Shown one piece after another: positions 7,298 to 45,346 of a stretch of DNA of 64,000 nt. Location: NCBI GenBank assembly GCA_907165135.1, contig OU015570.1, positions 1,488,001-1,552,000 on the forward strand. The letters run 5' to 3'. Every line of letters starts with the position of its first letter. Within the stretch, counting starts at the first letter, position 1. The stretch comes from Oikopleura dioica. Its lineage: Eukaryota; Animalia; Chordata. The position numbers and the translations under genes were made by a program. The notes beneath the pieces are model-generated. The model was given only the letters and a program-made list of their open reading frames with translations, had not been told where the DNA came from and ran no database searches.

Positions 7298-8597
7298 TTC
7301 GGTAACCCTAACTAACCCTAGCCTATCCCCCTCGGGTGAGGTTGTTCCGTCATTTTCGCAGGTGCGCCCTAACCCTAACCTTTATTTTAGCGAAAACTAC
7401 GATTTAAATGTTTTTATCGAGAAAGGACTATTTGGGGAGCTTCAACTTTTTCTTTGACTTTCTTTAATCGAGGATTTTCAGAAGATTATCTTGAGAGCAA
7501 GGTCGAATCGACAAAAATTGTACACTTCGGGTAAGGGGGATTTTTATGCGGCTTCGCGTTTAGATAAACTTACCAACAAGAATTGCATCTTGAAAGACGC
7601 CCAGCTCTTAGATTAAATTCTTGTTGTAAAGAATAATCAATTTGGAATCTCTGTCAGGAAACATAATCTGTCTGTCGAAGCAAGAGAGATCTTTTATGGA
7701 TAGACATTCATCTTGATTATTAAACTATCATTTATATGTGATGATTTTTTTATTCCAAAATGTTTTTCGGTAAAAGAAAGAAAGAAAAAATTTTGTTGAA
7801 GTTGAAGAAGATTTGTTTCCATTCTGGACACCCTTGGACCGCCTGGGTCATTGAGGGGCGCGCTGCTTGAAAATGCCTCAAAATTTTCGAAAAAATGCTG
7901 ATTTCGTAAATATGGCTTCCTCCTACAAAAAAATTTCTTCGAATTTGAGTAGAGAATATAAAAAAACATATTATGACTTTTTTTAAATTTTAAAAAAGGA
8001 TGTTCTTGGGTGATTTTGCATTTTCGCCCAATTTCGGACCTCATTATTTCTCAACCCTTTCATAGATAATGGAATAGGAATAACTAGGGGTTAAATGGTG
8101 AAAAAATGAGCAAAATTCAAAATTTAAAAAACCATTCGAAATCGATGTATATGTATAAAACAAATCACAAGGAAGATTTTATTCTATTATTGGAAATTCA
8201 TACAACGTTGTTTTCCACAATAAATCTTAATTTTCTCTTGTTGATTACAATTTTTTCTCGATAACTTTTTATTTTAATCTCCTTTAAGTCTAAATCAAAA
8301 ATAATCTGAATCAACAGAAAAAATGCTTTCAGAATCTTATTCAACCTCTTTGTGCACTTTTGTGCAAAAAATTCAAGAGCAAATTATTTGTCACAACTCC
8401 GGAAGTCGGACTAGTAGGAGTGTTCGAATCCCGACGATGACACTATTTTTTCATACCGTTTTTCCTCGTTCTATGCCTAATTATGTTCAGGTGACTAGCC
8501 CTAAGTCATAATTATTCCTCCGGAGGACTATGATCCTTGAAAACTATTGCTGGAAGACTGGGAATTCAATTCCCTTTATTCGAAAAAATAGAAAAGG

Positions 8598-8756
8598 CCC
8601 GTACCTGGCTTTTAAATTGAAATGGGCTTGACGGCCCTTTGGTCGGTCTTAGCCCCGTACCTGGCTTTTAAATTGAAATGGGCTTGACGGCCCTTCGGGC
8701 CGTCTCAGCCCCGCACCTGGCTTTTAAATTGAAATGGACTTGAATTACGGCTAAAA
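8598..8756. repeat. 56-bp tandem unit of a dispersed repeat family
   Basis: CCCGTACCTGGCTTTTAAATTGAAATGGGCTTGACGGCCC starts at 8598, 8654 and 8710; also present at about 24744-24830 and, as single units, at about 38873-38910 and 55835-55866 (inverted). Confidence 0.75.
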
Positions 8757-9162
8757 TTTGAAGAAAAGTTTGAGATGATCAGTCTCATTTCTTTTCCAAA
8801 CCCCACCTATACCCGTTTTTCAATTTATTTCAGTTTGTCCTCCCCGATTTAAAATGATGGTTTTTGAAATTTCTATTATTTTATCTTTTTACATAAAGTT
8901 TTCTTCTTTCTTAAAAATATTCTTCCATCAGATGAGGTCTTCCGGCGTCCTTAGAGGGTCCACGTGATTAAATTATCAGATTTTTGAATGTCCACGCTTC
9001 GGTTAATCACCATACCGAAGAATTCCCTGGAAGAGATTATTTTTCATTTAATTTGCTTAAATTCTTCCATCATCTTGGTCCTCCGGGGTCCTCCAAGATG
9101 TCACATGATAAATATTTTGGAAAAATTATATGATCAGTGATTATCAGTAATCTACATTATGC

Positions 9163-9600: not shown

Positions 9601-11091
9601 CTTTGATGACCTTAAGTCACATGTCAAAATGATCAGTGGATCATGTGAGATCGAAATTTTCCCCGAGCTGAACAACTCACTCTCATAACTCAATAAAACA
9701 ATAGAACCGGCCAAGTAGAGTCCCCTTCCTGCAGGAAACCAAGAGAACAACTACGAGAGAAAGTTCAGATCTCTCATCTGGTGACCTCGCTACGAATTCG
9801 CGCCCCAGCAGAGAGCCAGATAAGGAAAGGGTTTTATGTTTCATGTCAGATGCTTCAACAATTATAAACAAAGCGTTACACAATACGAGTAAAGTATCAG
9901 CTGCCATAAGACAGAGTCTTCTTTTTCTTCCATTGGTACACGAAGACGAAGAAACACAGACAAATTACAGGCAGACAAATCAAATACCTACGAACGCTGA
10001 AATTGTTGAACGCCTGAAAGAACTGAATCTTGAATACATTGTTTTTATCTTTTCTACATATCGCGGACGATTCTCACTGATCCCGATCGAACTTCGAGAA
10101 ACTCCAGTCTACAGGAATCAAGTCAAAGCTTTTTCATCACTACTTCACGATTTTAAAACGAACGAAAGTCTCAGAAGAAGAACATCGCTATAAGACATTG
10201 AAGAGCTCCTACAACTTACGGACGAAGGATTACCCGGATTCGTTATTTACGCAATAAGAACAATAATCCACACGGTTACCATTAATAAACCAATCGTAAA
10301 CAGTGGATTAGAAATTGCAGTTCAAATGGAGCGAGAAAATGCCAGCGAAGGTTCTAATAATGAAACAATTTTTGAAGATGCTGTAGACGATGGTCCAGAT
10401 CAAATTGATTCTTCTTTCATCGGAAAATCCCTTTGACGATCTTTACCGACTTGCGAATGGAAAATCGAGAAACAGGGACTATTACAGGTAATTAAGGGCT
10501 TTAATTGGCCAAAAGTAGCAGTTTTAGCAAAAACTTTCACCAAAAGGGCTTTACTCAGCCTAGGTTTTCCCAAAAGGGCTGTTCTTAGAACAGAAAAAGA
10601 AGAGGCTTTAAACAGCCAAATATCAGTTTTCACCCAATTTTTAGGAAGCAAGACGTTCATGTGAATGCTCCAAGAAGCCCGACCATTTGCAAGGCCGTTG
10701 ACGATGCTGCCAGGGCCTCAGTCAAGAAAATCGAGTACAAGATTGACAAAGATCTCAACCATTACAAGTCGCTGACAGTTCGTGGCCACTATGTCTGCGT
10801 CAACAGATTTGCTGAGTCGGTTTTTGGAATCTTCAAGAAAGCTGAACAAGACAAGGCATCAGCCACAACTGAAACAGTGATTCAGCTCACGATCGCACGA
10901 AAAAAGAACCTCGAATTCTACTTGGATAACTTGTCCGACTCCAAGATCAAATCACTCTGCCAGAAAATTGATGGAAAGAAAGCCCTTCAAAACTACCGTT
11001 TGGCAAGAATCGCAACTCAGCTCAAGCTACAAGAATTCGCCGCGAAGCGCCGAGAATCGATTGCAAAGGAGAAAGCTGAAAAACAACTGAA

Positions 11092-11299
11092 TGTTGTAAC
11101 CTGCTGAATAGATGTGGAAGTCAAATGATGAGTCTCTATTGTTGTTTTATAAAAGTTGATTTTATTTTCAGATTGTGTTTTGAGAAACAGAGTGTTAGTT
11201 GGACTGAGGTCCTAATCAGAGAGAGCTCTGATCAGAATTCAAGTGATAAAAATAAAGTCGGCTCCCGAAGAGCGCCACACCCAAGGGTCGGCTACTACA
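11092..11299 (-). repeat. 3' LTR
   Basis: TGTTGTAACC...GGCTACTACA, identical by eye to 22775-22982. Confidence 0.97.
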
Positions 11300-11476
11300 C
11301 TCGGGGCTCCGGGGGAGAAAATGTGCACAGGTTCACAAAGTCGTATATTGTAAGTACAGTCAGATACAGTAATAAGAGAAAAAGGTTAGTATACAGAGAG
11401 AGAAAAAAAAAAATGAATAGGGTCTTAAATCAAAAAGGGTCATTCATCTGAGTTCATGTTGTGCATTTTTGTTCCT

Positions 11477-12778
11477 TCAGTCTTCTAGAACATCGTACAA
11501 CTGCTCGTTTTCATGATTGATAATCCGTTGGGTCCACAGTTGCAGCGAAATTCGTCTTGACGACAGATATGAAGGGACTAGAAAGAAGTTTTGTATCATC
11601 GGGACCGTCCTGCCATCCAATAATTTCACACTCGAAAGATTGACCGGTCCCAATTTGCCGATTTCTATAGTTCCTAAGTTCCCAATGCTGCGTATAGTTT
11701 GTTCGTTCCGGAACAGTGTCTTTATAAGGCATCGTTTTTGGATTGCCAGTCGTTGTTTCAGAATCACGATACAGCTTTCCGATTCATACACTACTGTGTA
11801 CTCTTGAGGAAGTGACTCCATTAGAGTCTCACAGTGCTCTAAGGCCAAGAGTGGCGCTATTAACGAGGTGCCCGGGACTTGAATAGTCTTTCTGAAATCC
11901 TGAATCTTCCTTAATGCATCCTGCTCCCGTGACGTTCTCAAATTTTGCCGCTCATAGCGTCGTCTGTTGTTCCAATGATCATTGGTTGCATCCCATTCCA
12001 TTCCTTCTGCGTTCCATTCGTTCCGTTCCTGACCATAATTATTTTTATGACCTTCGCGTTCTGAGTAATCTTCTTCTCTTTTGCGAGAATTCTTCCGTCT
12101 ACGTTCTTCTTCTTCTTCTCGTTTCCTTTTACGAGCCTCCTCTTCCATTCTTTTACGATCTTCTTCTTCTTTCCTTTTCCGTTCGTCTTCTTCCTTTCTT
12201 TTACGATCTTCTTCTTCTTTCCTTTTCCGTTCGTCTTCTTCCTTTCTTTTACGATCTTCTTCTTCTTTTCTTTTACGATCTTCTTCTTCGGCCCTTGCTT
12301 GTGCTTGTTCTCGTTCCTCTCGTTCCCGCTTTTCTTTTTGAAGTCTATCTTGCTCTTCCTTCCGGCGCCTTTCCTCCTCCGCTTGCTTTTCCGCTCTTTC
12401 ACGTTCTTTTTGTTCCTTCATTCTCCTTCTTTCTTGTAGTCTTTTCCGTTCCTCTTCTAGATCACGCTCAATTCCCGCAATGATTTCGAAATTGTCCGTG
12501 ACCAGCCCTTTAACGCAAAGCAACCGGGTCCGTAGTTCTCTTTGTTCCTCACTTACTACCATGATCTTATCAGGATGGAGATATAACATTGTTCGCTTCA
12601 CAAATTTGTTAACAGCCTGTGGCTGTATCATCGGCACTGCTAAGTTGAATCTCTCCGCAACTCCTTCTAAGAATCTTGCAATTGAGAAGCCAGGTCTAGA
12701 AATCCATCTAGCCAGGTCTGGGTGGGTCGATAAAATTCTGTCTTGATAAACAAGAGTGTTTACGGCATCTTCGTACAT
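11477..12778 (-). CDS. Fourth ORF of the LTR element: J-domain-like segment + E/R/K single-alpha-helix repeat + unknown C-terminal domain (433 aa)
   Basis: QAVNKFVKRTMLYLHPDKI resembles J-domain helix II-HPD; about 130 aa of EEEDRKRK/EEDERKRK-type repeats; uninterrupted ORF between env and the 3' LTR. Confidence 0.75.
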   Translation of the reverse strand: MYEDAVNTLVYQDRILSTHPDLARWISRPGFSIARFLEGVAERFNLAVPMIQPQAVNKFVKRTMLYLHPDKIMVVSEEQRELRTRLLCVKGLVTDNFEIIAGIERDLEEERKRLQERRRMKEQKERERAEKQAEEERRRKEEQDRLQKEKREREEREQAQARAEEEDRKRKEEEDRKRKEEDERKRKEEEDRKRKEEDERKRKEEEDRKRMEEEARKRKREEEEERRRKNSRKREEDYSEREGHKNNYGQERNEWNAEGMEWDATNDHWNNRRRYERQNLRTSREQDALRKIQDFRKTIQVPGTSLIAPLLALEHCETLMESLPQEYTVVYESESCIVILKQRLAIQKRCLIKTLFRNEQTIRSIGNLGTIEIGKLGPVNLSSVKLLDGRTVPMIQNFFLVPSYLSSRRISLQLWTQRIINHENEQLYDVLED

Positions 12779-13869
12779 CTTGGCTTTTTCTTTTTGTTTT
12801 CGGGACAGAGGTCCCTTTTTTGTTTATCTCTTACTTTTCCTTGTTGAGAGCAACTGATGTGACATCGTGATTTTTTTTTTCGAAGTGGCACATTTTACGA
12901 GGGGTGAGGCCCTTATTTGGCCTATCTTTTGATTTTGATGAGTTCTCACATAAATAATTGGCAGTGTCACAGCTGGTTGTAAATTAAAGAATGCTTTCAT
13001 GTAAAAGTCAAGGGAAATTATTTTAACATAAAAGAAGATAATTAAGTTTTACGACGGAAAGAAAATGATCTTTGATGTCGGCAAGTGGCAGTGAAAATAA
13101 TAAATTTACAATTGGCAGTGAAAATTGGAATGTACAATTGGCAGTGAAAAATATTTTGCTTTGAACTGTTTTCATGTTATAATTGAACTTTGAAGAAATT
13201 GAAGAAATTCAGCTTTGCAGTGGATTCAATAAAATCCTTCTGCACCAGCTGATGATTATGATAATGATTTTAAGAGTTAAGTTAGATTACTATATACAGT
13301 ATATACAGGTATTAAAACGATGATAATCTTTACAAGTAGGTTAAAGCAGAGTTTACAGTATGTACAGGTTTTTTTCATTTTTTCATTTCTCGTATCTTTT
13401 TATTTAATATTTATATTTTGCATTTTTTTTTTCTTTTCTTTTTCTTTTTCTTTGGCAAGCAGCATAGATAATAATAATGATAAGCACATAATTGTATATA
13501 TTTATTAAATTTTTTTATTTTTTTTAAAAAGCCTTGTTTTCATCCTGGATTTCTTGTGTTACTTTAAGCAGCATTTCATTAGCATTTAAAAAAATAATCA
13601 AATATCGTTACTCCGGTTATGGGTTGAACTTTGGTTTAGAAGCATTTAATAGTTTTCGCATCACTCATTTTTAGTGAAAATTAATAAACATTCTGTGATA
13701 ATTATAATTGATGAATATGAAGGTGCGTTCATTTTAAAAAGATAATTATAAGCAGTTTACATTTAAAGCAAGCTGGGGAGTTTTATTTCTGAATATTCTA
13801 CACAGACGTGTCTCTCATTTGATTGGTTCTGAAATTAGCAATTGTTGTTTGAGTTGTTTTCTTACACTT

Positions 13870-15192
13870 TTAGAACGAGTTCCATATGCATCTTAGGAAG
13901 ATGTATCCTAAGATTAAGATGGCAAATAGTAGTAAGTATTTAAAAACTATCCGAGCCGTTCCCTCATGTTTAGGCTCGATGTTCAAAATGGACGTTATAA
14001 GAGTTGAAGTTTTGTTTACTTGGTTTCGGTGATCTTGTTCCTGTTTAACTGCCAGAGAGGAAATTCTCTTCTGAAGCAGATGTAAATCTGTTTCCAAGAG
14101 TGGAACATCCTGCAAGTGTACCTCTAAGTCCTGAACTATATTAAGTTCAATATTTCTGGACTCTTGTGGGACGTCAAAAGGTACTCCTGAGCATGTTATA
14201 AATGTGCCAGGAGTAGTTAATATTGTCGGTGAATTTGGGGGAATCACATCGATCGTCTTCCCTAACATGTTTTCAACATCCGATTTGTATGAAACTGGAA
14301 GTGGAGTCATACTCCAAACACCTAGTCCCATTCCTCTAGGTAGTTTACTGACGAGACATGATTCTCCAGTATATGGAATTGTTTTGCAAAAAATGTTTAT
14401 AAAGTGTTCATTTCCTCCAAGGATGGCATTAATACATTTAAGATTCAAAGGCTCAAGATTGTCCGCAAGAGTGCAAATCGCATATTTGCGATTATCTTGA
14501 AGGTCACAGTTTGATTTGAAAATATGAGTCTTTGTGACTGATATGTGACGTGGTAAGTCATGAACCTGTTTTAGTTGCCTACTCTGGTCTAGAAAAGGAA
14601 ACGTTAAAATTGAGGTAATAGTCTCATTCGGAACAAATATCGGAATCAGGACTTTGATTCTTACATCGATTTTATCCTCACCAATAAGAACTGTGTCTAC
14701 TTGACATTTCATTGATTCCAGAATCTCGGGATTCGAGCAAGCAATGATCTTGGAGGGATTTAAATGGCTGCAGGCATGCGCTAACACTTTATAGTGCAAG
14801 CCATTGGGTAGTGAGCCACCCGAGCATCTCCTTATGGCGAGCTCAATTTTTGAAGCAAGGTCAGAATAGGTGAGACGAAGCTCTGTGAGCCTCAGATTGT
14901 TGACATTGTCAGTAGTGGCTACACATAAACTGTCTTTGAGAAGACTTATTTTAGCATCTTCACTTTTAATCGAAGTGGTCAAATCACTTGAGGTGACCAT
15001 TTGTTTCGCCAACTTGCTTATTTTCTCATCCTCCATTTCCCGGAGGTTCTTCACCTCTGTATTGATACTGGAGGGGAGAGAGCTCCCCATGCGACCAATA
15101 CTGGAAAATAGACATTGATCTTTTCCTTCTTGAATAGGCTGGAGAGCCAAAACAAAAATGTTGAGCTGTAAATAGAAGGTCGCCTTGCCCAT
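13870..15192 (-). CDS. env: Env-like protein, C-terminal (TM subunit) part
   Basis: Heptad-like region, Cys-rich ectodomain, C-terminal TM helix IVFKYLLLFAILILGYIFL; the biologically relevant part begins just after the RRKR site, in a frame +1 from the upstream ORF. Confidence 0.8.
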   Translation of the reverse strand: MGKATFYLQLNIFVLALQPIQEGKDQCLFSSIGRMGSSLPSSINTEVKNLREMEDEKISKLAKQMVTSSDLTTSIKSEDAKISLLKDSLCVATTDNVNNLRLTELRLTYSDLASKIELAIRRCSGGSLPNGLHYKVLAHACSHLNPSKIIACSNPEILESMKCQVDTVLIGEDKIDVRIKVLIPIFVPNETITSILTFPFLDQSRQLKQVHDLPRHISVTKTHIFKSNCDLQDNRKYAICTLADNLEPLNLKCINAILGGNEHFINIFCKTIPYTGESCLVSKLPRGMGLGVWSMTPLPVSYKSDVENMLGKTIDVIPPNSPTILTTPGTFITCSGVPFDVPQESRNIELNIVQDLEVHLQDVPLLETDLHLLQKRISSLAVKQEQDHRNQVNKTSTLITSILNIEPKHEGTARIVFKYLLLFAILILGYIFLRCIWNSF

Positions 15193-16258
15193 TTTCTGCC
15201 ATATATGTAAGCAAGTCTTTTATATGCTCAACTTGAAGCCCATACTTACAGGTGTATTGACTACAGCATTCATAGCCTTCAGCAGTGCAATCAACAACCT
15301 CGCCAAGCGAGTAGGAGTCAACTGGAGAGTTGTCCTTAATGCACGTACCTCGATGATACCTTGCATTTTTGTCCGGAAAATAGCCTATTGTTGGAAGTAC
15401 CCTTTCTCTATGTTTAGTCGTGGTGGGCTCCGTCCGTTTTGTGGTATTTGGACGGTTTGTCGTCGTTGTTGTTCGCCTTGTTGTATTTTGCCGCTTCGTT
15501 GTCTTTGGGCGTCTAGTTGTTGTTGTCGTTGGCTTTGATGTCCTGGGCTGTTTTCTTGATCGATTTCGCGATTTTACGGTCGTACGCTTTGTAGTGTATT
15601 TCGTGGTTGCCATTCTTGTTGTGGTCGATGGTTTTGTTGTCACTACGCGCGCCTCTGTTGTCGTTGTAGTTGCCCTTTTAGTCGTCGGACTCCATCTCAG
15701 CTTGTTATCTTCCGGCAGCTCTGTCGAGCGAATTGACGGTGCTGTCATTTCAATCACACGATAATTTTTATTATCTATAGTTGGTGGAGGAGTCCAGCTT
15801 GTTAATATTACATCATTCGGGTTGGGTGTCCATCTTAGTTTGTTGTCCGTTTCACTAGAAGGTTTTGTTGGCGTGATTGAGATCACCGTTTCTTGTGTTG
15901 TTCTCCTTTTCCTTGAATATCCACTTTCTTCCTTAATCTCCGCTAGGAATTGCTTTCGGAGAGCTAGGGCCTGTTTGGAGACCTCTTTAAAATTTTCATC
16001 GCTATCAATTTTAGTTTTTATGGTTTCTAGCATCTCAGCATCACAGTGAGCAAACATTGATTCCAGAATAGGAAGTTCGAACGAAAGATCTATTTTCACT
16101 GGCTGGTAGTTTTCTATTAGTAAGGTAGTATTTTGGGGTTCTTGAACAAGGGCTAAACCTAAAGGTGCGATTATCTTTGTCTTAATGTTTGTTGGGGAGT
16201 ACAATTGGTTTCTCGTTGTATTCACGATCGTTGGTGTAACGACTTCTGGCTCTTCCAT
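15026..16258 (-). CDS. env: Env-like protein, N-terminal (SU) part with mucin-like Thr-rich region
   Basis: Two furin-type sites (YSRKRR|TT and YSRRKR|SM), Thr/Pro-rich stalk, Cys cluster; lies directly downstream of pol. Confidence 0.75.
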   Translation of the reverse strand: MEEPEVVTPTIVNTTRNQLYSPTNIKTKIIAPLGLALVQEPQNTTLLIENYQPVKIDLSFELPILESMFAHCDAEMLETIKTKIDSDENFKEVSKQALALRKQFLAEIKEESGYSRKRRTTQETVISITPTKPSSETDNKLRWTPNPNDVILTSWTPPPTIDNKNYRVIEMTAPSIRSTELPEDNKLRWSPTTKRATTTTTEARVVTTKPSTTTRMATTKYTTKRTTVKSRNRSRKQPRTSKPTTTTTRRPKTTKRQNTTRRTTTTTNRPNTTKRTEPTTTKHRERVLPTIGYFPDKNARYHRGTCIKDNSPVDSYSLGEVVDCTAEGYECCSQYTCKYGLQVEHIKDLLTYMAENGQGDLLFTAQHFCFGSPAYSRRKRSMSIFQYWSHGELSPLQYQYRGEEPPGNGG

Positions 16259-16569
16259 TTGTGTTTGGAGGGGTTTCTCTTGAGCGGTTATGACTAGAAG
16301 TAATTTGAAAAAGAAACATTTTAGTTTGTTTGAAGAGATCTTTATGTGATAAGTTTTAATGATGGGCGTGGTACCGGTAACAGGCGGTATGTGTATCCTT
16401 TGACCAAGACCATAACTATCAAGGTTATTTTTACATCAAGGTCTTTGATCTCATTTTTACGACAGGTTATAATTAAAATTAATTTTATGTAATGAGTTAC
16501 TTTGAAGTGCGTTTTCCTTTTATGTTAACAAGCCGGTATCTTTTACGGTGGTATGAACTTTCGTCAAAG

Positions 16570-19500
16570 TTATTTCTTAGTCGGCTGATCAGACCGGCTT
16601 TTGCTTCTTAAATTATACCTCACCGGAGCCTTTGCTCTTTCATCGATGTCTTTGAATGTCACTCTTTTCCTTGGGGCCCCCTTTTTCTTCACTTCGGCTG
16701 TTTCGTCTTCCTTCATTTCTGTTATTTTATCACGCGACTTCTCCTCTCGCAATTCATTTTCGTCAGTTATTCTTCTTACTCTGTCGATTGCCACGGTCGA
16801 TCTTGGTGCCCGCAACCGTTTATCACCCGTGTCGTTTTCCTTCTGTATCGTGAGTGAATTTTGTTCTGGATGCAGTCTCACAATCCTATAAGTCTCACTT
16901 GACCATCGCTCCCTTGCTCGTTTTGGTATCCCAGGCTTGGGATCAGTTTTAATCCGGACTCGGTCATTTTCTTTTAGTCGAATCCGTAGAGTTTCAGCCT
17001 CCTCATTGATTGCTTCATCTAAGTCTTTTATTAGAGTCTGTCGGATCCGCGAAAGTTGGGCTGTTAGCCACTTCATGTACGCCTCTTGAGAGGAATGAAA
17101 CGCCTTCCGCGGCAGACGAATTCCGAAGTTTGGCAGTTGTCCTGTAACGATTGTAATTGGTGCGAACTTGCTCGTCCTTGCCTTCGTATGATTAACCTCA
17201 AACGCGATAAGAGCACATATCGTGTCCAGTTCTGATAGCGTCATGAGTAACGGTAGCGTGTTATTCCCTGTTAGAGTCGCAAGTCTTTCGCCGATAGTCC
17301 GATTGATCCGTTCGACTTTCCCATTGCTTCTTGAGTTTTTCGGACTTATGTATGTCAGAGCAATCCCCAAGTTGGTCATCATATCCACGAATTGTTCACT
17401 CTTGAACGTTTTTGCATTGTCACAGACCACTTCCTTCGGTAGCGACATTCTGAGCATTAATTTAGTCACTGTCTCCAATGTGTCTCCAAGTTTTTCAGAA
17501 TGAAGAGCGGCCATGTCAGTGTACCCAGAGAAATGATCTCTCACGACCATGATGTAGTAGGGTTTGCAAACAAGATTGTCCAAGTGGCAACGCTGGAAAG
17601 GTTCAGTTACCAGGTTTATCGTTTGACCAATTTTAACTGGATGACGAGCCACCGCTTTCCGACGGGTGCAGATTTCACAGGAAAGTCCAAACTCGGTGAT
17701 AGTACGCGTCATGTTCTCAAACCACAGATTGAGCAATTCCATCTTTTGCAAAATGGCCCTGTTTGTTGTATGATTATGAAATTGTGCAATCAGGCTGCAA
17801 ACTTCGTGATTTGGCACAACAATTTGATCTCCTTTGAATAAGATATTGCGTCCAATCTCCGGGTCCATCTTTGTCTTAAACCCAGGCACCTTTTCATTAT
17901 TCAAAAGCTTTCTTATCCGTTTTTGTGTTTTCTTGCAATCATGCTGTGATTTCTTGATTTTCTTTTGTAGCTCTGTTACTTTAATCTGAGCCTCCGGAAT
18001 AGTCACGTTCATTGTTGTTATTACAGTACTGGTTGATGATTCTTGTCGGTAGTCCCTCCTTGCCACATCCGTCACCTTTTCTTTATCTTCGGGGTCTACA
18101 CTAATCCAGGTATCATGGATATCTTTTACTTGTAAAATTGGCTCTTTTGACTTAGTTCCTAATCTAACTGGGGAGTTAAGATGAATCTTATTTCTTGAGA
18201 GCAAGTCAGTAAGGTGAAAATCTGCATCAGTTCCCTTAGACCACTTAACATCTATTTCAAACATATTTAAGTAGATGATTGATCTAGCAATTGGGTTTGA
18301 AGTTGTTATTTCCAGGTTCCTTGCTCCTCGTATAACATGAACTACGGACTGATTGTCCGTTATCAAAGTAAATCGTCTCCCTGTGAGCAGGTTAGCATTG
18401 AAGCGAACGGCTGAGAACGCTGACCACAACTCTTTCGTCGGAATTGACCAGGACCTTTGACCTTTTGTGAACTGACGACTGTCCACAGCAATAATCCTTT
18501 CTTGTCCATCAATCTGTTGAGACAGAACGCTTCCATAAGCATAAGTTGAGGCGTCCGATCGAAGGGTGAAACGCTGATTGAGATCTGGTTTTGTAAGCAA
18601 AACGCTGTTCGCTGTGCATCTGAGGAGTGCATCCCACGCTTCTTTTGCCTCTTTCGATTTCGGATTATATTTTGAACCAGGTTGCGCCCATTCAAACAGT
18701 TGTCGCGCCACTTCCGCAAATTTCATGAAAGTTGGGCGAAAATATGCAAACGTCGCGATCGCCTTGCGCATTGCGGTGGACGATTCCGGTATGGAGAGTG
18801 TCAAAAGTTTGTCAATTCTTGCCTTTGACGGCTTGTAGCCGTTTCGATCCACCGTGTAGCCAAATATTTCTAATTTTTCTTTGAGAAGAATTGTCTTCGA
18901 TGGGTTAAGGACAAGATTGGCATCACCAAGCTTGTTAAAGAACCGTCTGAGGACGTCGTTGTGCTCTTCAACTGTGTCTGCATAAATTGATATGTCATCT
19001 ACATAGCAGCAAATGTTTTTCTCGTTTTCCGCCAGCACACTCGTGATGAGTGACTGTAAGAACGAGGTGATAAGCCTACCGCCAAAAGGAATTCGACGAT
19101 ACTGGTAGGCTTGTCGCTGAGGCGACAGAAATGTATAGTGATGCCTGTCATCTGGGTGCAAAACGAATTGATGAAAGGCCGATGAAAGGTCTAATGAACT
19201 GTAATATCTGTGTCCCGAGAGCTCCTGTAGAATGCTCTGCAGTGGTGGTAAGGGAAAATTTTTATCCGCAATGGTAATATTATTTAGTGGACGGAGGTCC
19301 AAACAAGGTCGTAATTTATCATTGCCTTTTGGAACTATTACCCAAGACGCCGTGATGACATCCAAATTGGGTATCTGTTCAACTACTCGTTGATCTTCAA
19401 GTGAATTAATGTGATTTTGGAGAAAATCTTCGTATTTCTGGGCGACTGGAATGTACTTCCTTGGTTGAGGCTGCGAAGTAGTTTTGTTTATTTTATAGGG

Positions 19501-20379
19501 ATATCCTAAACGGAATCCTGGACCAATGTCTTTGTCATTTCTAGCAAATATATAATGGAATTCTTCCACAAATTCCTCAGTAATGCATCTAAGCCGGCCA
19601 TTGAGATGGTCTAGTTTTACTTTTACGTCCTTTGGATCAAGGTTTTGATATTTACGTAGGTGTGGTCTATTCTTAAATTCTTCAACGTCTTCGAGCAAGC
19701 GTTCCTCTTGTAACGTTGGTCGTATTAAGCAGAGCTTTGTCCCTGCCGGTATTTTTAGCACTTCCGTTGAGTCATTGATGATCATCGATTTCTCTCCATG
19801 AGAGATTACTGGGAGGTCCGTTCTATCTTTATATTTTCCGAGAAATGCCATTTGAACTCTGCCATTGGTTTCAATTGAAATACCGGTGTTATCCAGCTCT
19901 TGCTGCGCTTGTGGTTCTAAGCAAATCTGTGTCGAGATTTCCACAGTGTCAGCTGTGAGCAGCCTCAGGGCATGACTCTTTTCCGAAATTTTGTTATAGA
20001 GATAACACCATCTGGAACCAAATTTTAGATCAAAATTCGAAATAACTGAGTATGGAAGGATTATTTCTCTAGCAAGGTTATCTAATACCAAAAGTGTCAC
20101 TGATGATACAAGTGCGTCTTTGGTTCTACCATCAACGATTTTAATGTCTACCGTTATGATTTCTTCTTGTGATGTAAGTTTATCTGTGAACGCCGAAATG
20201 TCTATTGTTCTATTATGTCGTACGCCATACTCTGCAAAAGGGTGCCGTGAGTCAATAGCTCCAAGCATTGCACCTGTATCAAGCAAGACTTCTGAATAAA
20301 CCATGCCTCCCTGGTGGTTGCCACTGCTGTCAAGACAGTAAGCTTCCGCCATGAAGGCAGGAACATCTGTGAGGGTCAT
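16570..20379 (-). CDS. pol: Pol polyprotein (aspartic protease, RT, RNase H, integrase), 1269 aa, intact frame
   Basis: LLDTGA protease; LRPCLDLRPLN, SLDLSSAFHQ, YVDD (RT); RSDASTYAYGSVL, ITDNQS (RNase H); H..H...CEIC, CHLD, VVCDNA, NGKVERINRT (integrase). Domain order is Ty3/Gypsy. Confidence 0.97.
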   Translation of the reverse strand: MTLTDVPAFMAEAYCLDSSGNHQGGMVYSEVLLDTGAMLGAIDSRHPFAEYGVRHNRTIDISAFTDKLTSQEEIITVDIKIVDGRTKDALVSSVTLLVLDNLAREIILPYSVISNFDLKFGSRWCYLYNKISEKSHALRLLTADTVEISTQICLEPQAQQELDNTGISIETNGRVQMAFLGKYKDRTDLPVISHGEKSMIINDSTEVLKIPAGTKLCLIRPTLQEERLLEDVEEFKNRPHLRKYQNLDPKDVKVKLDHLNGRLRCITEEFVEEFHYIFARNDKDIGPGFRLGYPYKINKTTSQPQPRKYIPVAQKYEDFLQNHINSLEDQRVVEQIPNLDVITASWVIVPKGNDKLRPCLDLRPLNNITIADKNFPLPPLQSILQELSGHRYYSSLDLSSAFHQFVLHPDDRHHYTFLSPQRQAYQYRRIPFGGRLITSFLQSLITSVLAENEKNICCYVDDISIYADTVEEHNDVLRRFFNKLGDANLVLNPSKTILLKEKLEIFGYTVDRNGYKPSKARIDKLLTLSIPESSTAMRKAIATFAYFRPTFMKFAEVARQLFEWAQPGSKYNPKSKEAKEAWDALLRCTANSVLLTKPDLNQRFTLRSDASTYAYGSVLSQQIDGQERIIAVDSRQFTKGQRSWSIPTKELWSAFSAVRFNANLLTGRRFTLITDNQSVVHVIRGARNLEITTSNPIARSIIYLNMFEIDVKWSKGTDADFHLTDLLSRNKIHLNSPVRLGTKSKEPILQVKDIHDTWISVDPEDKEKVTDVARRDYRQESSTSTVITTMNVTIPEAQIKVTELQKKIKKSQHDCKKTQKRIRKLLNNEKVPGFKTKMDPEIGRNILFKGDQIVVPNHEVCSLIAQFHNHTTNRAILQKMELLNLWFENMTRTITEFGLSCEICTRRKAVARHPVKIGQTINLVTEPFQRCHLDNLVCKPYYIMVVRDHFSGYTDMAALHSEKLGDTLETVTKLMLRMSLPKEVVCDNAKTFKSEQFVDMMTNLGIALTYISPKNSRSNGKVERINRTIGERLATLTGNNTLPLLMTLSELDTICALIAFEVNHTKARTSKFAPITIVTGQLPNFGIRLPRKAFHSSQEAYMKWLTAQLSRIRQTLIKDLDEAINEEAETLRIRLKENDRVRIKTDPKPGIPKRARERWSSETYRIVRLHPEQNSLTIQKENDTGDKRLRAPRSTVAIDRVRRITDENELREEKSRDKITEMKEDETAEVKKKGAPRKRVTFKDIDERAKAPVRYNLRSKSRSDQPTKK

Positions 20380-20473
20380 TATTTTAAGGTTTTGGTTAGT
20401 TGTGTTGATTGTTAAAATTTACAAGAAAGGATGCGGGTTTTTTTTTTTTTTTATATCTTATTAATAAGCACGG

Positions 20474-22711
20474 TTAATAACGTCGTCCTTCTCTACTTGA
20501 GTTTCGAGAAGATTGTCTCGAGTTAGAGTTTGATCTGTAACGTGACTCTCTTGAAGTAGATCTTTCTCTAGAAGAATCTCTTGAGTTTCGCCTTGAGGAA
20601 TCTCTGCTTCTCGAGCGTGTGTAATTGCTGTTTTTTGAGCGGTCTGAGGACCGTGATTGAGATCGCCCTCTTTTATCGCCCCTCGGAAAGGGTGTGCCTT
20701 TACGCCCTCTCTCTTTACGACGCTCATGACGGCCTACCGTTTTCTGATTTGCTGTACACATTCGAGCAATGTGACCTTTAAAACCACATCGATGGCATTC
20801 AATATCTTTCAGCGATCTCCGTCTTCGGTTCCCATCTCGTCGGTCGTTGTTGTCATATCTTCTGTTAGATGTTCGCACAACACTCATTTGCGTTTTCAAC
20901 GGTTGCATTGCCTCCTCAGCCTCATTTGCCAGATTTCCAATATCTGCAAATGGTCTTGTCTTCTCATGAAGTTTGACATGTTGTGCCACCGCTTGATTTT
21001 TGAGCCCATTTGTAAAGAGGTACAGAATGTCCTCTTGTCTATCTCTCTCAGTGATTGCTGACGGAGATGGTGGGAGCACCTTTCGCGAAAGATAGAACTC
21101 TCGAATCACTCTCATGAAAAAGCTTAGTGGTGATTCAGTAGGTCCTTGTCTTAGAGAGCTAAGACTTGCTCTATGAGAAAGTGAAGATCCTCCATGAGCC
21201 CGTCGCAAATGATCAATGAATTCCGGGAGACTTCGTTTTTGCTCATTTGTCAATTCACGCAAAATGTCCATTCGACCCGAGTTTTCGAGCGAACTGTAGA
21301 TCAGTGACGCGTCTGAGAGCAGAGAGAGTTCACGAAAGAGTATCAACGAATCTATAAAGTCATTGAGATGACTTGCTTTTTGGCTCGCATCAGAAGACTT
21401 AGCCCAAACTGGCGCCTTGACGGTCGCCTTCAGCCCTTGATCCCTTCCAACTTCATATCGAGGTTCTTCAGCTCGCAGTCGCGCTCCTTCATTTGGACGA
21501 TTTCGCTCCCTGTTCAGTTCCTGGTCTCGCTGCTGTTGTTGCAGTTCAAAGAGAAGCGTCATTCGCTCCACTTGATGCTGCAGTCGTTCTATCTGCTCTT
21601 GGCTCATTCTCTCGGTCTTAGCAACCGAAGTGTCTTCTTCTAGTTTTTCTGTCTCTTCCCTTCGAGTCTCTTTACGAACTGAGTTCATTGCTTGGCCGTC
21701 GCCCCTATGTCCATCAACATTCTCAAGTTTATGACCAGGTGCCGCCATATCGTCTCTGGTATTTTTACGGTCTGCAGGTGGCTTCGTGTTATTAGCTTTA
21801 TCTCCTGATGTTTCAAGGTTTACTACCGCCGGAGACGGCTGGAGGGCCTCTTTCTTTTGATGTGGTACCGGCTCATCAAGAATTAATGGTGCGACCTGGT
21901 TTGTCCGAGGAAAGATGTTGTTGAGTATCTTCTTGGGTGAGAGGCTTCTTCCTTTTGACTTTTCCTTGTGCAGTCGCTCAAATGTCGTTGCTTTGTGCCT
22001 CATAGCATCAAGTTCGTTGGTAAGACGTCTTATCTTCTGCTCATTAAGCCCGGCATTATAACGAAGGTCCGCAATTTCATTCTCTTGCTAATCGATGGTG
22101 TCTTTCAGATCTCTCACTTGTTTCTCCATAATGATCGCTTTTTCCGAGAACTCTTTAGCGGCCTTTTCATACGCTTCATTGAAAACCAGACGCTCACGTT
22201 CTTCAAACTCATTAATGACATCTTCGACTTTCATCGCCGAGCCAGAGACAAATAACTTTTGTTTTTGTTCATCAATGTTTTCCTCTACTCTCTTAATGAA
22301 GTCATCTATACTCCTCTCAAGGATAACATGCTTGTCTCCTAATTTCTGAGTTTGTAGTCCTTCTAGTATTTTCTTATCTAATTTACTAAGGTCATCAATC
22401 AATTTTGTCACATCAGTAAGAGTACTTGGAGAATGAAGTAAATAGCATCTGTCTTTAGGTGCTTTATCCTTAGGTGCTACAACTAGTCTAGAAATATCTA
22501 ACGAGTAAAAATTAACTATTGACTGAAAATTGGATGTTGGGAAGCGCAGAGGCACTTTTGTGAGTCCTTTTTTATCTTCATACTTACTCCTAAAAAATTC
22601 ATATTTTGCCTTTGGGTCAAGCTCTGCAAGATTCTCTAGAATCGCAAGAGCGTCGACTAGGACTGTATCTAAGTCTGTTAGTGAGTAGAAAAATCTCATC
22701 TCTGTACTCAC
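20474..22711 (-). CDS. gag: Gag (746 codons including one internal TAG at 22088-22090)
   Basis: Track ORFs 22088-22711 and 20474-22003 are the same frame, separated only by TAG (..DTID*QENEIADLRY..); zinc knuckle CHRCGFKGHIARMC; RS-rich tail. Confidence 0.9.
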
Positions 22712-22752
22712 TTTTGGGTATTCTCTAAGGTTTGGCGCTGGGAAAATATCCT

Positions 22753-22770
22753 ATCCCACTTCTGACACCA
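22753..22770 (-). promoter_or_regulatory. Primer-binding site complementary to tRNA-Leu 3' end
   Basis: TGGTGTCAGAAGTGGGAT, 4 nt after the 5' LTR; matches the ...ATCCCACTTCTGACACCA end of metazoan tRNA-Leu(CAA) as recalled. Confidence 0.85.
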
Positions 22771-22774
22771 TTTG

Positions 22775-22982
22775 TGTTGTAACCTGCTGAATAGATGTGG
22801 AAGTCAAATGATGAGTCTCTATTGTTGTTTTATAAAAGTTGATTTTATTTTCAGATTGTGTTTTGAGAAACAGAGTGTTAGTTGGACTGAGGTCCTAATC
22901 AGAGAGAGCTCTGATCAGAATTCAAGTGATAAAAATAAAGTCGGCTCCCGAAGAGCGCCACACCCAAGGGTCGGCTACTACA
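22775..22982 (-). repeat. 5' LTR
   Basis: Identical to 11092-11299; followed on the minus strand by the PBS. Confidence 0.97.
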
Positions 22983-23746
22983 TGAAGAAGGAATTGAAGA
23001 AGGAAAACAAAACGCCACTCAGGACTTCGCTTCCAAAAAGAAGAAAAGTCGCCAAAGAACTATGATTTTAATAATAACAGCTGTTTTAACTGCCGAAAAC
23101 TGATCAAAATAAACTATTTATTGAAATTTCCGCTCGGTGAATTGATTCCGATTAGCGCGCGCTCAGTGTTAAACAGGTCTAAAAATAAGTGTTTGTTCTG
23201 AGAGCTTTTCAGGCTTATTAAAGGCTTAAATTGTGAGCTCTCTTAATTAATAATCACGAGCAAAAGGTTTGCTGGCAAGATTACTTTATTCAAACCATTT
23301 TTGGATCGAAATATGCAACCTGAAAGGTTAGAATAAGGGGTACCATCTTCGAAAGTTTAAAGCGATCTCTCGCGCCACCATGTGGATTAATTGAACAAGT
23401 AAATACATATTTGGAATCAGCGTAAAAAACTGTACAAGATGTTAAATTTTCGAAGTTATCGAAGCACCTTGATTTTTCCGTGAAACTATTATAATGATAT
23501 ATCCGAATTTATGATCTTAAAATATCTTTTTATAGGTTTTCGAACGCGCAGATTTCGAAAATTTCATCAAAATATCGAAATTGTGACCATTTTTGGAAAC
23601 AGCCGTTTGAATTTGAGCGAGCTAAAAGTGCGCTAGGGAAAAACTGAAAACGCCATGTGAAAGAACTCATTTCAATTTGTATGTCCATGAAGTTTCAGAA
23701 AATTATCGCAACAGGACGGTCTTTTCGACAAAAATTGTCGAGCTCC

Positions 23747-24600: not shown

Positions 24601-25245
24601 AACCCCCCTTTTAGCTCTCAAATTGTTTTTGCTCAAAAATAATTGTTATTCTAGAAGCTTTAAGTTTTATACAGTGGGCGACAAATTTCACGATGGAGGG
24701 ATTTCTCAAAGGGGAAATTTGCGCGTGTTGTTGCGCGTCTCAGCCCCGTCCCTGGCTTTTAAATTGAAATGGGCTTGACGGCCCTTCGGGCCGTCTCAGC
24801 ACCGTCCCTGGCTTATAAATTAAAATAGGTTTGACAAAGGTTGGGATAAGTAGAGAGGATAGAGATGATCAGTCTCAGTTCCGTCCCCAACCCCACCCAC
24901 ACCCGTTTTTAAATTATCGTCAGTCTATTTTTCCCGAATTAAAATTACGGGTATTTTATATTTTTTTCAAAATTCTTCCAGGACTTTTGATTTTTCCGGA
25001 AGAAAGTCCTTTGTGCGGATTTGCATGCGCAACATCGAAAATATTAGCCCTCAGTCTTGATTCACGTGATTTATAGTGCTGACCTCAAACTACAATTTCA
25101 CCTGCGTGAAAATCCACTCGCGCGCGCGGCGTTACAGCCGCGCGAATGAAATTTCACCCGTTCAAACAGACCAAGAGCCGCGCCAGCACACCAAACTTAT
25201 TTCAAACGATTTATTATCTTATCACCGCGAAATAACTTTCATTCC

Positions 25246-32650: not shown

Positions 32651-34174
32651 CATTTGTTGGCGATAACGCTTGAAGTGATCTCAATTATGTTTAAGATACG
32701 ATTCTAATGCAAACTGCTGAATATAAATTACAGAAGTCAGACGAACATCTGATGGACGAGAACAAACTTTTGAATACAGACACTCACAAATATAAGTTCG
32801 AAGAATTGATCAACTACTTTAATTAAGTTATAACTAATGGTATTGAAGATCTTTCCGATAATTGATTTTGTAAAATCTTCTGCGCCTTTGAGTTTCCAAG
32901 AGAAATAACTTCATCTTAAAGCACAATCGGTTTATCACTCGAGAGAGTCTGACGAAGCTGTTGACTGCTCATTCTCAGCGGATCATGCATTAGTTTTTAT
33001 GCTTCCCATCTTTCGTAGTTGAAACGGATAACCGAGTAAGGAATGAAGCAATTATCGTCAGAGATTTCCAAGTTTTCGATTTTAACCTTATTATCATCTG
33101 GAAGATCGCGATTACCATATTCAATATTAGCGCGTGTCAAGTGCGTGCCTTTTGAAGTTCAGAAAAATCTAATTTTTGCTTATAGAAAACGACTGGTTGC
33201 TTACACTACAAGTCTGGCGATTCACGAGCGAAATACCAAGGTAAACTCATTTTTGAACATTCCTATGGCTTGCATAATGAATAGATTCTCCAAATTGAAA
33301 AAACCATCGCCATACGGATCGCGTTGCGTTTTAAAGCCAAAATGAATTTTTCGACGACACAGACGACCTCTACTTTTACACTGTAAAATTTACAGTGACA
33401 CGGAAGATACCACTGTCCATTTCGTCCTTTTTCAATGAATCTTCGATTAAAGACGTACGAATGTGGTATTCATGAAGATGATGTGCTTCTTTAGTGTGCG
33501 ATCTTCCATTTGGGTCAGAATTTTTAACATGGTAATTTTAGGAAGACAAGGATGAGAAAAAAGGAAAGAAGAACAGCTCTCACACCACCATCCTATCCAT
33601 TTGGAACTCCATCCGGACGTTTGACCTTGGGCTTTTGAACAAGCTGGATTTGCTCAAATTATGTGGGTTTATGTGGGACACTTTTGCAAAGATGATTTTC
33701 CACTTTTGTGGACATTTTCCCTGGTGAAAAAATTTTAGAGGTAAAAAAAGCGAATTTTTTCAAAGATCTATTGTTTTTTCTAAGACAAAATAAGCAAGAA
33801 AATTGCGTTTCAAGGAAGAAATTTGCTATTTATACAAAGAAACTAATGGGACGGAAAAATTTTTAAGCCTCTGCGGTCGGACATTTTTTGGAGACTCTTG
33901 CCCATTTTTGTGGACATTTTTGATAAAATTTGGGACAAAAAATGTCCACAAAAGAGAAAAATAACTGTACAATGGTTCCGCTTTTCGTAGAATAGTTCTG
34001 CGTTTGGTTTTTTAAATTTTAAATCCAGGTTTGACTAACGTACTATGCCCATTTTCACCACTTTTGAGGCTTATTATCTCTTCAACCCTTTATAGTTTAA
34101 GAAAATTTAAACAGAAAAAATTTTTAATTACTATTATCTAAAAGATATTAAAAATTGAATGCATACAATATGTA

Positions 34175-34940
34175 CCGTGGTTTTCCATTTTAAGAGCGCC
34201 CAATTTAAGAGCGTTTTCGCCAACATTTTGCAAATTATGTTATCTGCGAAAATTCAAATTTAAGAGCGTTTTTGAAGATTTTTATGCAATCAAAAAATTT
34301 TTAGACTCAAATAAATCATAAACTAAAACGTGTAATCTCTGACTGCTTTTCCGGTCATTTTAAAGTCAATGGTTTGGTAGTGTCGGCTCCTTCTGTCATT
34401 TGAACTTGAGGTTCTTCTCCAATCTCCATCGCCGACCGACCATCAGGGTCGGAGCTCTTTTGCTTTTAATCTGATTCCTAGATATTTAATTTACCTATTC
34501 CTACAAAGGCTAGAAAATGTACCCTGAGGCATGTCTTCCCCATCATTTTCCTTCGGATTATCTATTAGATCTCCATGACAGTCTTTCTCCCATCCTTTCT
34601 TTTTGAGCCTTCACCAGAATCTGCGCATATTTTTTCTTCTAAGCCAAAGACATGTGTTTTTCTTTTCTTCTCCAGGCATTTTCGTTGTTTAAATTTTGAA
34701 GAATGAAAGAGATCAGATTAAGAAAAAGCGCTCGAGCAAAATCCTGAAAAAATCACTCACGTTCTCATCTTGATATACAATTACTTTTGCTTCTAGATCT
34801 TTTCTGTTTCATACTTTCGAAATTCCCTGAAAAATGAAAATAACCACTGTCATCCTATATCGATAGAAAAATTTCCAATTTAAGAGCGTTTTAGGCAAAC
34901 CCTGTCATCTAAAAAACGCTCTTAAAATGGAAAACCACGG
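34175..34940. mobile_element. TA-flanked non-autonomous DNA transposon (Tc1/mariner-type TSD)
   Basis: TA|CCGTGGTTTTCCATTTTAAGAGCG...CGCTCTTAAAATGGAAAACCACGG|TA; truncated copies start at about 28485 and 47896. Confidence 0.85.
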
Positions 34941-36546: not shown

Positions 36547-36756
36547 TGTTTATCAATGCACATTTGCTCCGCGCTGCGCGCCACTCACATTCACTGTCCG
36601 CGAAGTTCACACATAAACACACTAAACTCAACTACCAAAAAGAATTATTTTACTCTTTTGTATCCTGCAGCAGGATTCCTGCTCCGGAATACAAATAAAC
36701 CAGTGTCAACAAACCCAATTTATGTACTTTGATAAACACGTACATATTTTGGTGAC
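36547..36756 (+). mobile_element. LTR-like segment (36547-36738) followed by TGGTGAC PBS-like motif
   Basis: TGTTTATCAA...TTGATAAACA 10-bp inverted ends, AATAAA inside; longer related sequence at about 48566-48866. Confidence 0.55.
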
Positions 36757-36969
36757 TAAAGAAAACGGAACGCCTTCAACGTAACCAAGCTAGAACCAGA
36801 AAAAGAACCAGAAGAAAGAATCAGAAAAAAATAAAAAAGATTTTATCCTGACCTTCTGCAGGCCGCCGCTTCCAAGAACAGACTCACGTAAGTACAGGTT
36901 ACTCAATAGGCTAAATTTTTGATATCATGGAGGAACTTTATAACTTTAGAACTTTATTATAAATTGGTA

Positions 36970-37358: not shown

Positions 37359-37429
37359 TAGTTGATCTGACAGCTAAAGAGCTTATGCTTATTTATGACA
37401 AGCACCCGGATAAAAATACCCGCTCCCTA

Positions 37430-45307: not shown

Positions 45308-45346
45308 AATAATTTCAAATCTTCTCGATCTTGTATATTTCCCTAG

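Follow-up and report, generated by a model that had tools for sequence, protein, structure and literature searches.

The question raised by this locus is what a fourth open reading frame (ORF4) is doing downstream of the env-like gene of an LTR retrotransposon in Oikopleura dioica. The initial annotation of this 64,000-nucleotide stretch of DNA (the window) proposed an answer, reading the product as a J-domain-like module joined by a single-alpha-helix linker to an unknown domain. We examined the element, the reading frame and each of the three parts in turn. ORF4 is confirmed as a 433-aa frame between env and the 3′ LTR, inside identical LTRs; the only correction needed is that it lies on the minus strand. 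It is carried by an 11.9-kb Ty3/gypsy-type element at 11092–22982, also on the minus strand, with the following layout.

11088–11091 (minus): target-site duplication on the 3′ side, TTCA in element orientation, read directly
11092–11299 (minus): 3′ LTR, 208 nt, with TG...CA ends, 100% identical to 22775–22982
11300–11476 (minus): untranslated stretch from the ORF4 stop to the 3′ LTR, 37% GC
11477–12778 (minus): ORF4, 433 codons plus stop, ATG at 12778 and stop at 11477–11479
12779–13869 (minus): AT-rich non-coding spacer from the env-like region to ORF4, 1091 nt, 29% GC
13870–16258 (minus): env-like region, one part, with a Thr-rich mucin-like portion, Cys-rich portions, a multibasic motif and a C-terminal TM anchor
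16570–20379 (minus): pol, with a protease motif, RT, RNase H and integrase in Ty3/gypsy order
20474–22711 (minus): gag region, one part, a coiled-coil-like N-terminal extension and gag with a CCHC knuckle (Pfam zf-CCHC)
22754–22770 (minus): putative primer-binding site, beginning TGG 4 bases past the 5′ LTR, read from the sequence
22775–22982 (minus): 5′ LTR, 208 nt, 100% identical to the 3′ LTR
22983–22986 (minus): target-site duplication on the 5′ side, the identical 4 bases TTCA

Since ORF4 is enclosed by identical LTRs that are themselves flanked by the 4-bp TTCA duplication, it is part of the element and was copied along with it. It sits within the LTRs and outside gag, pol and env, as an accessory ORF does. 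TG...CA LTRs, a 4-bp target duplication and the pol order RT–RNase H–integrase place the element in the Ty3/gypsy (Metaviridae-type) group. Pfam matches in pol were RVT_1 (1.5e-22), RT_RNaseH_2 (6.7e-18) and rve (1.9e-6), and identity between pol and the nearest proteins found was only 21–31%. The env-like region holds 20 Cys in all; its C-terminal TM segment has a KD19 of 2.54, and a hydrophobic N-terminal stretch could be seen by eye. We found no relative of this region in Pfam or PDB, and its sequence matched no env family.

The identity of the LTRs spans only 208 nt, which bounds the age of the element accordingly and points weakly to a young, recently transposed copy. The element is not obviously intact: a single in-frame stop interrupts the 746-codon gag region, and one frame change divides the env-like region between two reading frames. 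We did not find an obvious polypurine tract in the untranslated stretch at 11300–11476. There is no second copy of the element in the window, and ORF4 was seen in one copy. The other ORFs scanned in the window gave Pfam matches to retroelement domains only, apart from two weak, sub-threshold matches to unrelated families. There were no tRNA or Rfam matches in the window, and none of its proteins was present in a collection of 15e9 proteins.

The stop in the gag region and the frame change in the env-like region would be consistent with an ORF4 that is itself non-functional, either a decaying remnant or a frame that its low-complexity, GA-rich repeat happens to hold open. That repeat does create spurious ORFs on the opposite strand and in another frame. 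Outside the repeat, however, 287 codons of ORF4 are open (P = 1.6e-8 by chance), and the other two sense frames across the same interval hold 25 and 24 stops. We regard a non-functional frame as very improbable.

Neither a TM segment nor a signal peptide was present when ORF4 was searched for them. The product would be a soluble, three-part protein: about 100 residues at the N-terminus would be helical, about 143 would form the ER/K helix, and the C-terminal region, about 185 residues long, would mix helix and strand. The features within the frame are as follows.

12467–12778 (minus): N-terminal region, residues 1–104, predicted helical with low confidence
12716–12766 (minus): second HPD, residues 5–21 (HPD at 19–21), preceded by a stretch resembling that before the main HPD
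12557–12625 (minus): J-like motif, residues 52–74, a basic helix then HPD-K, with HPD at 68–70 (12569–12577)
12038–12466 (minus): ER/K-rich segment, residues 105–247, predicted single alpha helix, about 21 nm if fully helical
11480–12037 (minus): C-terminal region, residues 248–433, a polar N/W/R-rich lead-in, then about 150 residues that mix helix and strand

The single-alpha-helix linker described by the initial annotation corresponds to a strong ER/K sequence pattern across residues 105–247. This segment is 82% charged and 8% hydrophobic, with 0 Pro and 1 Gly, and its acidic and basic blocks alternate; it lacks both a hydrophobic seam and helix breakers. Opposite-charge i/i+4 pairs number 86, against 46.8 ± 4.9 in shuffled sequences, and none of 5000 shuffles reached 86; like-charge pairs number 11 against 46. 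Single-alpha-helix (SAH) domains are familiar from myosin VI, myosin X and caldesmon. ORF4 shares with them blocks of about 4 acidic then about 4 basic residues, dense i/i+4 pairs of opposite charge, hardly any hydrophobic residues and an absence of proline. Its 143 residues place it at the long end of the SAH range, and the segment, a predicted helix, is partly made up of a recent tandem repeat with a 24-nt (8-codon) unit (7.5 copies at 12108–12289, found with TRF). We infer from this pattern that residues 105–247 form a single alpha helix, although the tandem repeat could be recent slippage rather than a selected spacer. PDB matches of the ER/K part (8hcy, Sec3, myosin VI) were set aside as compositional rather than family relations. 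Among them is a weak match to unconventional myosin-VI chain 8w41_A at residues 893–1000 (E = 0.43), presumably the single-helix region of myosin VI.

The N-terminal motif quoted by the initial annotation is also present, at residues 56–72, and a K-R pair at 61–62 precedes its HPD at 68–70. An HPD thus follows a candidate basic helix II, a motif that is weak by itself. ORF4 contains two HPD tripeptides, where 0.007 would be expected from its own composition. We considered whether the two AVN...HPD units arose by duplication within the N-terminal region. The local score of 27 had p = 0.034 against full shuffles and p = 0.34 when HPD was held fixed, and we rejected the duplication as not significant.

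If the motif is taken at face value, residues of about 35–105 would be a genuine J domain of auxilin-like type, though a highly diverged one. Its HPD loop would activate host Hsp70, the ER/K segment would serve as a spacer, and the C-terminal domain would pick the client, in particle assembly or uncoating. In favour of this reading, the K-R pair before L-HPD-K, together with hydrophobic positions that match in part, lines up in register with helix II of E. coli J domains and with 3ag7_A. The latter, an auxilin-like J domain (Arabidopsis JAC1), was the best PDB match of the N-terminal query (E = 0.23; query 48–74 against chain 49–75 of 106). It has the basic helix and L-HPD-K in common with ORF4, at a similar distance from the N-terminus in its 106-residue chain. 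NCBIfam ActJ, which from its name we take to be a J protein, matched residues 55–85 below threshold (E = 0.16). A single-sequence AlphaFold2 model of residues 1–115 had a pLDDT of 41 and is unusable as a structure. Its low-confidence helices fall at 2–11, 15–18, 20–26, 33–43, 53–64 and 77–114, and helix 33–43, helix 53–64, a loop at 65–76 and a helix from 77 onward would fit a J topology. A J domain followed by a linker and a client domain is also the usual layout of J proteins, and ORF4 has the domain–linker–domain arrangement of many of them.

Direct searches did not bear out the J-domain claim. PF00226 had no match at E ≤ 10 in ORF4 or in its N-terminal 110 residues, yet the same profile detected the E. 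coli J proteins DjlA (41.8 bits), HscB (24.9), DjlB (21.1) and DjlC (19.3). These controls covered most of the 63-position model (HscB 2–62, DjlB and DjlC 2–51, DjlA 4–56). A home-made J profile gave ORF4 4.0 bits over positions 20–38 only, that is, helix II and HPD, and left helices I, III and IV unmatched. With HPD masked, the score fell to −2.8 bits. The real sequence scored above 96% of HPD-fixed shuffles, and 3.9% of them reached its score. True J proteins left out of this profile scored 13.8–15.1 bits over about 50 positions in two of three cases, while DjlC reached only 2.6 bits. The hhalign comparison of ORF4 with J domains covered 19 columns at a probability of 1.9%, and an exhaustive phmmer search returned no J protein at E ≤ 0.001.

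In all, the similarity to J proteins is limited to 19–27 residues, helices I, III and IV cannot be made out, and there is no significant profile match. The matches to 3ag7_A and ActJ are sub-threshold and restate the very motif that the initial annotation had chosen, so they are not independent evidence. HPD also recurs without a J context, in the second copy within ORF4 and once in the RT of pol. We treat the J-like motif as a lead rather than a domain assignment, and the J-domain reading is not supported by the sequence comparisons. A divergent J domain at residues of about 35–105 seems improbable to us, and recruitment of Hsp70 by ORF4 is correspondingly doubtful.

The C-terminal domain, which had been called unknown, indeed has no detectable family in Pfam, NCBIfam, PDB or a word search of 238–758 aa proteins. 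Residues 248–433 are non-repetitive, and a single-sequence AlphaFold2 model of residues 270–433 (pLDDT 38) was unusable. The same holds more widely: neither the whole of ORF4 nor its N- and C-terminal parts found a family in sequence searches of Pfam, NCBIfam or PDB. For residues 1–110, exhaustive phmmer of 1.84e9 representative proteins gave no credible homologue, with no J protein at E ≤ 0.001. Two matches in that search, P0001 and P0002 (E of about 5e-4), are internally repetitive proteins whose scores were summed over 4–6 repeats, and we discarded them as spurious; their best single stretch gave 32 bits. Word-index searches found no homologue of residues 270–433 among proteins of 238–758 aa, and none of residues 1–110 among proteins of 60–192 aa. 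A tblastn search of the N-terminal part against phage records produced only noise at E ≥ 3.

The lack of relatives bears on where ORF4 came from. It could be a passenger, a host gene or retrocopy that the element acquired, for instance through template switching, in the interval from env to the 3′ LTR. Its capture would be recent enough for the frame to be still open, and it would have no role in the life cycle of the element. The spacer that separates it from env is 29% GC, compared with 40–46% in the coding parts, and carries four AATAAA hexamers and A-runs, as well as a 26-nt tandem repeat at 13082–13150. Such a spacer, AT-rich and with hexamers resembling polyadenylation signals, is just as compatible with a captured passenger. 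ORF4 also has its own ATG and is related to no retroelement protein family, and expansion of a tandem repeat is typically seen in charged cellular proteins that evolve fast.

On the other hand, the searches revealed no cellular homologue, either of the N-terminal domain among the 1.84e9 proteins or of the C-terminal part among those of 238–758 aa. The N- and C-terminal parts of ORF4 are 44–45% GC and 30–33% A, and gag and pol are 43–46% GC and 33–34% A. Because this base composition resembles that of gag and pol, nothing marks ORF4 as foreign. Codon usage did not discriminate, as the correlation of ORF4 with gag and pol was r = 0.47 in frame and 0.53 in an out-of-frame control. We searched for signs that ORF4 is a nested insertion, namely flanking repeats or a poly-A tail, and found neither. 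Finally, 2.4 kb of useless cargo would be costly for a recently transposed element. On balance, we think it unlikely that ORF4 is only a passenger.

The explanation that we favour, though by a modest degree of belief, is that ORF4 is a genuine, lineage-specific accessory gene of an env-bearing Ty3/gypsy element, without detectable relatives, encoding a rigid-spacer adaptor or a regulatory factor. Its product would be made from its own subgenomic message, spliced or internally initiated, on the model of the accessory proteins encoded 3′ of env in complex retroviruses, or of CERV from Cer1. The ER/K helix would keep the two end domains about 21 nm apart and would also supply eight K/R clusters. 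One end would hold a component of the element (RNA, the Gag particle or the Env tail) and the other end a host factor. The frame itself, its position within the LTRs, the charge pattern and the absence of membrane segments and homologues were observed, whereas the expression of ORF4, its role as an adaptor and its partners are inferred. A nuclear location and a role in RNA export are conceivable as well, and here we are purely speculating.

Accessory genes of complex retroviruses lie between env and the 3′ LTR, are typically lineage-specific, and are expressed from subgenomic spliced messages. ORF4 occupies the same genomic position, but in an element of Ty3/gypsy type (Metaviridae-like) rather than in a member of the Retroviridae. 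A parallel among Ty3/gypsy elements is CERV, from Cer1 of C. elegans, which is lineage-restricted and has no obvious homology outside Caenorhabditis (PMC10309623). Like ORF4, CERV has its coding sequence close to the 3′ LTR of its element, is not a membrane protein and has no known homologues elsewhere; the likeness is one of position and description (PMC10309623). CERV is a regulatory accessory factor, neither structural nor enzymatic, and ORF4 may be of the same kind (PMC10309623). The two differ in that the CERV ORF takes the env position and makes up half of a spliced product, whereas ORF4 follows an env-like gene (PMC10309623).

Additional genes are found in other LTR elements. Those of bdelloid rotifers carry varied third ORFs, among which an env-like fusion glycoprotein, a GDSL esterase/lipase and a DEDDy exonuclease have been highlighted (PMC5408684), and plant LTR retrotransposons carry additional ORFs, or aORFs (PMC7264820). 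Like ORF4, these are extra ORFs inside the LTRs, beyond gag and pol, diverse and often without an annotated function (PMC5408684, PMC7264820). The highlighted rotifer types are recognisable proteins, however, whereas ORF4 belongs to no family and is additional to an env-like gene (PMC5408684).

Among animals, env-carrying Ty3/gypsy elements ('errantiviruses') are widespread (PMC13524379). They have in common with the present element the LTRs, a CCHC gag, a PR-RT-RH-IN pol, and a membrane-anchored, glycoprotein-like gene after pol (PMC13524379). The env-like region described here matches by sequence neither of their env types, F-like or gB-like (PMC13524379). A term search of that paper did not bring up any additional gene following env (PMC13524379).

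Our literature search for a retrotransposon combined with a J domain or DnaJ domain found no paper, and we know of no retroelement J protein. An element encoding its own divergent, auxilin-like J-domain co-chaperone, with a helix of about 21 nm linking it to a client-binding domain, would be the first that we know of; we give this little credence. Were the J-like motif to prove true, this would be a retroelement that supplies an Hsp70 recruiter itself, in the manner of some DNA and RNA viruses, a claim that present evidence does not justify.

The extra genes of LTR retroelements show how new functions are gained on the way to complex retroviruses, as with RNA export by CERV and the acquired enzymes. 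ORF4, a fourth gene located downstream of env in a Ty3/gypsy element whose pol is so distant from recorded proteins, would be an addition to a small list. It also offers what is predicted to be a natural long ER/K helix.

The initial annotation placed a 433-residue ORF (ORF4) between env and the 3' LTR of an LTR retrotransposon. We found this ORF at 11477-12778, on the minus strand, which corrects the orientation. As had been described, it lies inside identical LTRs. The element, of Ty3/gypsy type, measures 11.9 kb (11092-22982, minus strand); its two LTRs are 208 nt each, 100% identical, have TG...CA ends and are bordered by a 4-bp duplication, TTCA. In element order, it contains the following:

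Putative primer site, starting TGG
20474-22711, minus strand: gag region with a CCHC knuckle and, in the gag frame, a coiled-coil-like N-terminal extension
After gag: pol, with RT, RNase H and integrase in Ty3/gypsy order
13870-16258, minus strand: env-like region with a Thr-rich mucin-like part, many Cys, a multibasic (furin-like) motif and a C-terminal membrane anchor
12779-13869: non-coding spacer between the env-like region and ORF4 (1091 nt, 29% GC), with four AATAAA, A-runs and a 26-nt tandem repeat at 13082-13150
11477-12778, minus strand: ORF4, 433 codons, separated from the 3' LTR by 177 nt

The element is not clearly intact. A single in-frame stop interrupts the 746 codons of the gag region; either it is read through or this copy is defective. 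Two overlapping frames, implying one frame change, are needed to read the env-like region, which had no sequence match to any env family. Gag and pol do not overlap: they form two ORFs in different frames, 94 nt apart (20379-20476), so the translation route of pol is not evident, and neither the usual frameshift nor the usual read-through route to Gag-Pol is apparent. The closest relatives of pol share 21-31% identity with it, and their named sources include Schistosoma, turtle, fish, a green alga and plants.

The surroundings of the element seem to be rich in repeats, with these neighbors in the window:

34173-48087: remains of other Ty3/gypsy-type elements
41129-42769, minus strand: RNase H and integrase ORFs of those remains
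43871-47019, plus strand: gag with CCHC and partial RT of those remains
34173-34366 and 47894-48087: 194-nt repeat pair, 98% identical
48864-49389 and 54771-55297: direct repeat pair, 97-98% identical, 5.9 kb apart; these may be the LTRs of a further young element
8590-8865, 24737-24955 and 38871-39024: short repeat family with 56-nt internal units, flanking the element on either side and recurring at 38.9 kb
10661-11107, plus strand: K/E-rich ORF reaching into the 3' LTR

An older ORF, belonging to a host gene or to a different mobile element and comprising 10661-11107 and sequence beyond 22983, may have been the site of insertion.

The probability that the 287 non-repeat codons of ORF4 stayed open by chance is 1.6e-8, and the remaining two sense frames contain 24-25 stops. 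The 433-codon frame has probably been under selection in the recent lineage, and we regard a non-functional ORF as highly improbable. LTR identity over only 208 nt bounds the age of the element loosely, and a handful of post-insertion changes in 11.5 kb would be compatible with it. An open frame in a single copy therefore says little about selection acting on that copy; the 64-kb window holds no second copy of ORF4.

An N-terminal region, a stretch rich in E, R and K, and a C-terminal part free of repeats make up the translation. Within residues 105-247, 82% of positions are charged and 8% hydrophobic; Pro is absent and Gly occurs once. Opposite-charge i/i+4 pairs number 86 (46.8 ± 4.9 in shuffles, 0/5000 of which reach 86), and like-charge pairs number 11 against 46 expected in shuffles. 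Such a charge pattern characterizes the sequences of ER/K single alpha helices. At the sequence level this bears out the earlier reading of the run as a single alpha helix, which would span ~21 nm at 0.15 nm per residue. Part of the stretch is made up of a 24-nt tandem repeat (7.5 copies, 79-90% matching), which makes a recent change in its length probable.

The initial annotation also pointed to a J-domain-like motif, which we located at residues 56-72, with HPD, the tripeptide by which J domains activate Hsp70, at 68-70. All family tests run were negative or sub-threshold. PF00226, the Pfam J-domain profile, gave no match at E ≤ 10 to ORF4 or to residues 1-110. For calibration, four divergent J proteins of E. 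coli K-12 scored 41.8 (DjlA), 24.9 (HscB), 21.1 (DjlB) and 19.3 bits (DjlC), spanning most of the 63-position model. A home-made profile built from 83 bacterial J domains gave ORF4 4.0 bits, over model positions 20-38 only (helix II and HPD; residues 55-73), a score reached by 0.5% of full shuffles and by 3.9% when HPD was held fixed. Masking HPD reduced it to -2.8 bits. J proteins left out of that profile scored 13.8 (HscB) and 15.1 bits (DjlB) over ~50 positions; DjlC scored only 2.6. Aligning ORF4 to three E. coli J domains with hhalign yielded 19 columns (P = 0.026, probability 1.9%).

An exhaustive phmmer search of 1.84e9 representative proteins with residues 1-110 returned no J protein. 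Its sole two matches were dismissed as having repeat-inflated scores. One, a 586-aa repeat protein with ~138-residue units and two H-P motifs in each, matched residues 25-81 (E = 4e-4); its best single stretch reached 32 bits, and we judged the match to be chance. The best PDB match of the N-terminal query was 3ag7_A, an auxilin-like J domain, whose in-register alignment had a sub-threshold E = 0.23, and NCBIfam ActJ matched at E = 0.16, also sub-threshold. These two are not independent evidence, since both are driven by the L-HPD-K stretch already singled out in the initial annotation. Further HPD tripeptides occur at ORF4 residues 19-21 and pol residue 408 (0.007 expected in ORF4 by composition). 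The former is preceded by a stretch like that before the main HPD (AVN...L..HPD; 12716-12766, residues 5-21), a likeness that is not significant with HPD fixed (p = 0.34). The AlphaFold2 single-sequence model of this region (pLDDT 41) has helices at 33-43, 53-64 and 77 onward with HPD in a loop, a J-compatible topology to which we give no weight. That ORF4 has a real Hsp70-activating J domain, and is a true divergent J co-chaperone, we consider quite unlikely; our estimate is no lower because the flanks score marginally above chance (p ~0.04) and orphan proteins of such elements are quick to diverge.

Sequence searches found no relatives of ORF4: its C-terminal part had no match among proteins of 238-758 aa, and none of the window's proteins is present in a collection of 15e9 proteins. 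Our preferred reading, held with moderate confidence, is that ORF4 is a genuine, lineage-specific accessory gene of the element. Its product would be soluble and three-part, with a stiff ER/K helix keeping two end regions apart, and may be translated from a message of its own and serve as an adaptor or regulatory factor. An internal promoter or a splice acceptor could lie in the spacer, which might alternatively be a scar left by a capture event. The AT-rich, AATAAA-bearing sequence upstream of ORF4 would suit a captured passenger gene, but the base composition of ORF4 is like that of gag and pol and no insertion marks surround it, making this origin unlikely.

Complex retroviruses carry accessory genes 3' of env, and ORF4, read as an accessory gene of the element, would resemble them. 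It would likewise resemble CERV, a protein of the C. elegans Ty3/gypsy element Cer1 (PMC10309623), and the third ORFs, of various kinds, in rotifer elements (PMC5408684). Literature searches turned up no paper that brings together retrotransposon and J-domain or DnaJ-domain terms. Ty3/gypsy elements that carry an env are now recognized to occur widely among animals (PMC13524379). LTR elements with extra ORFs have been described before; ORF4 is a new, unrelated example, in an unusual place after env.
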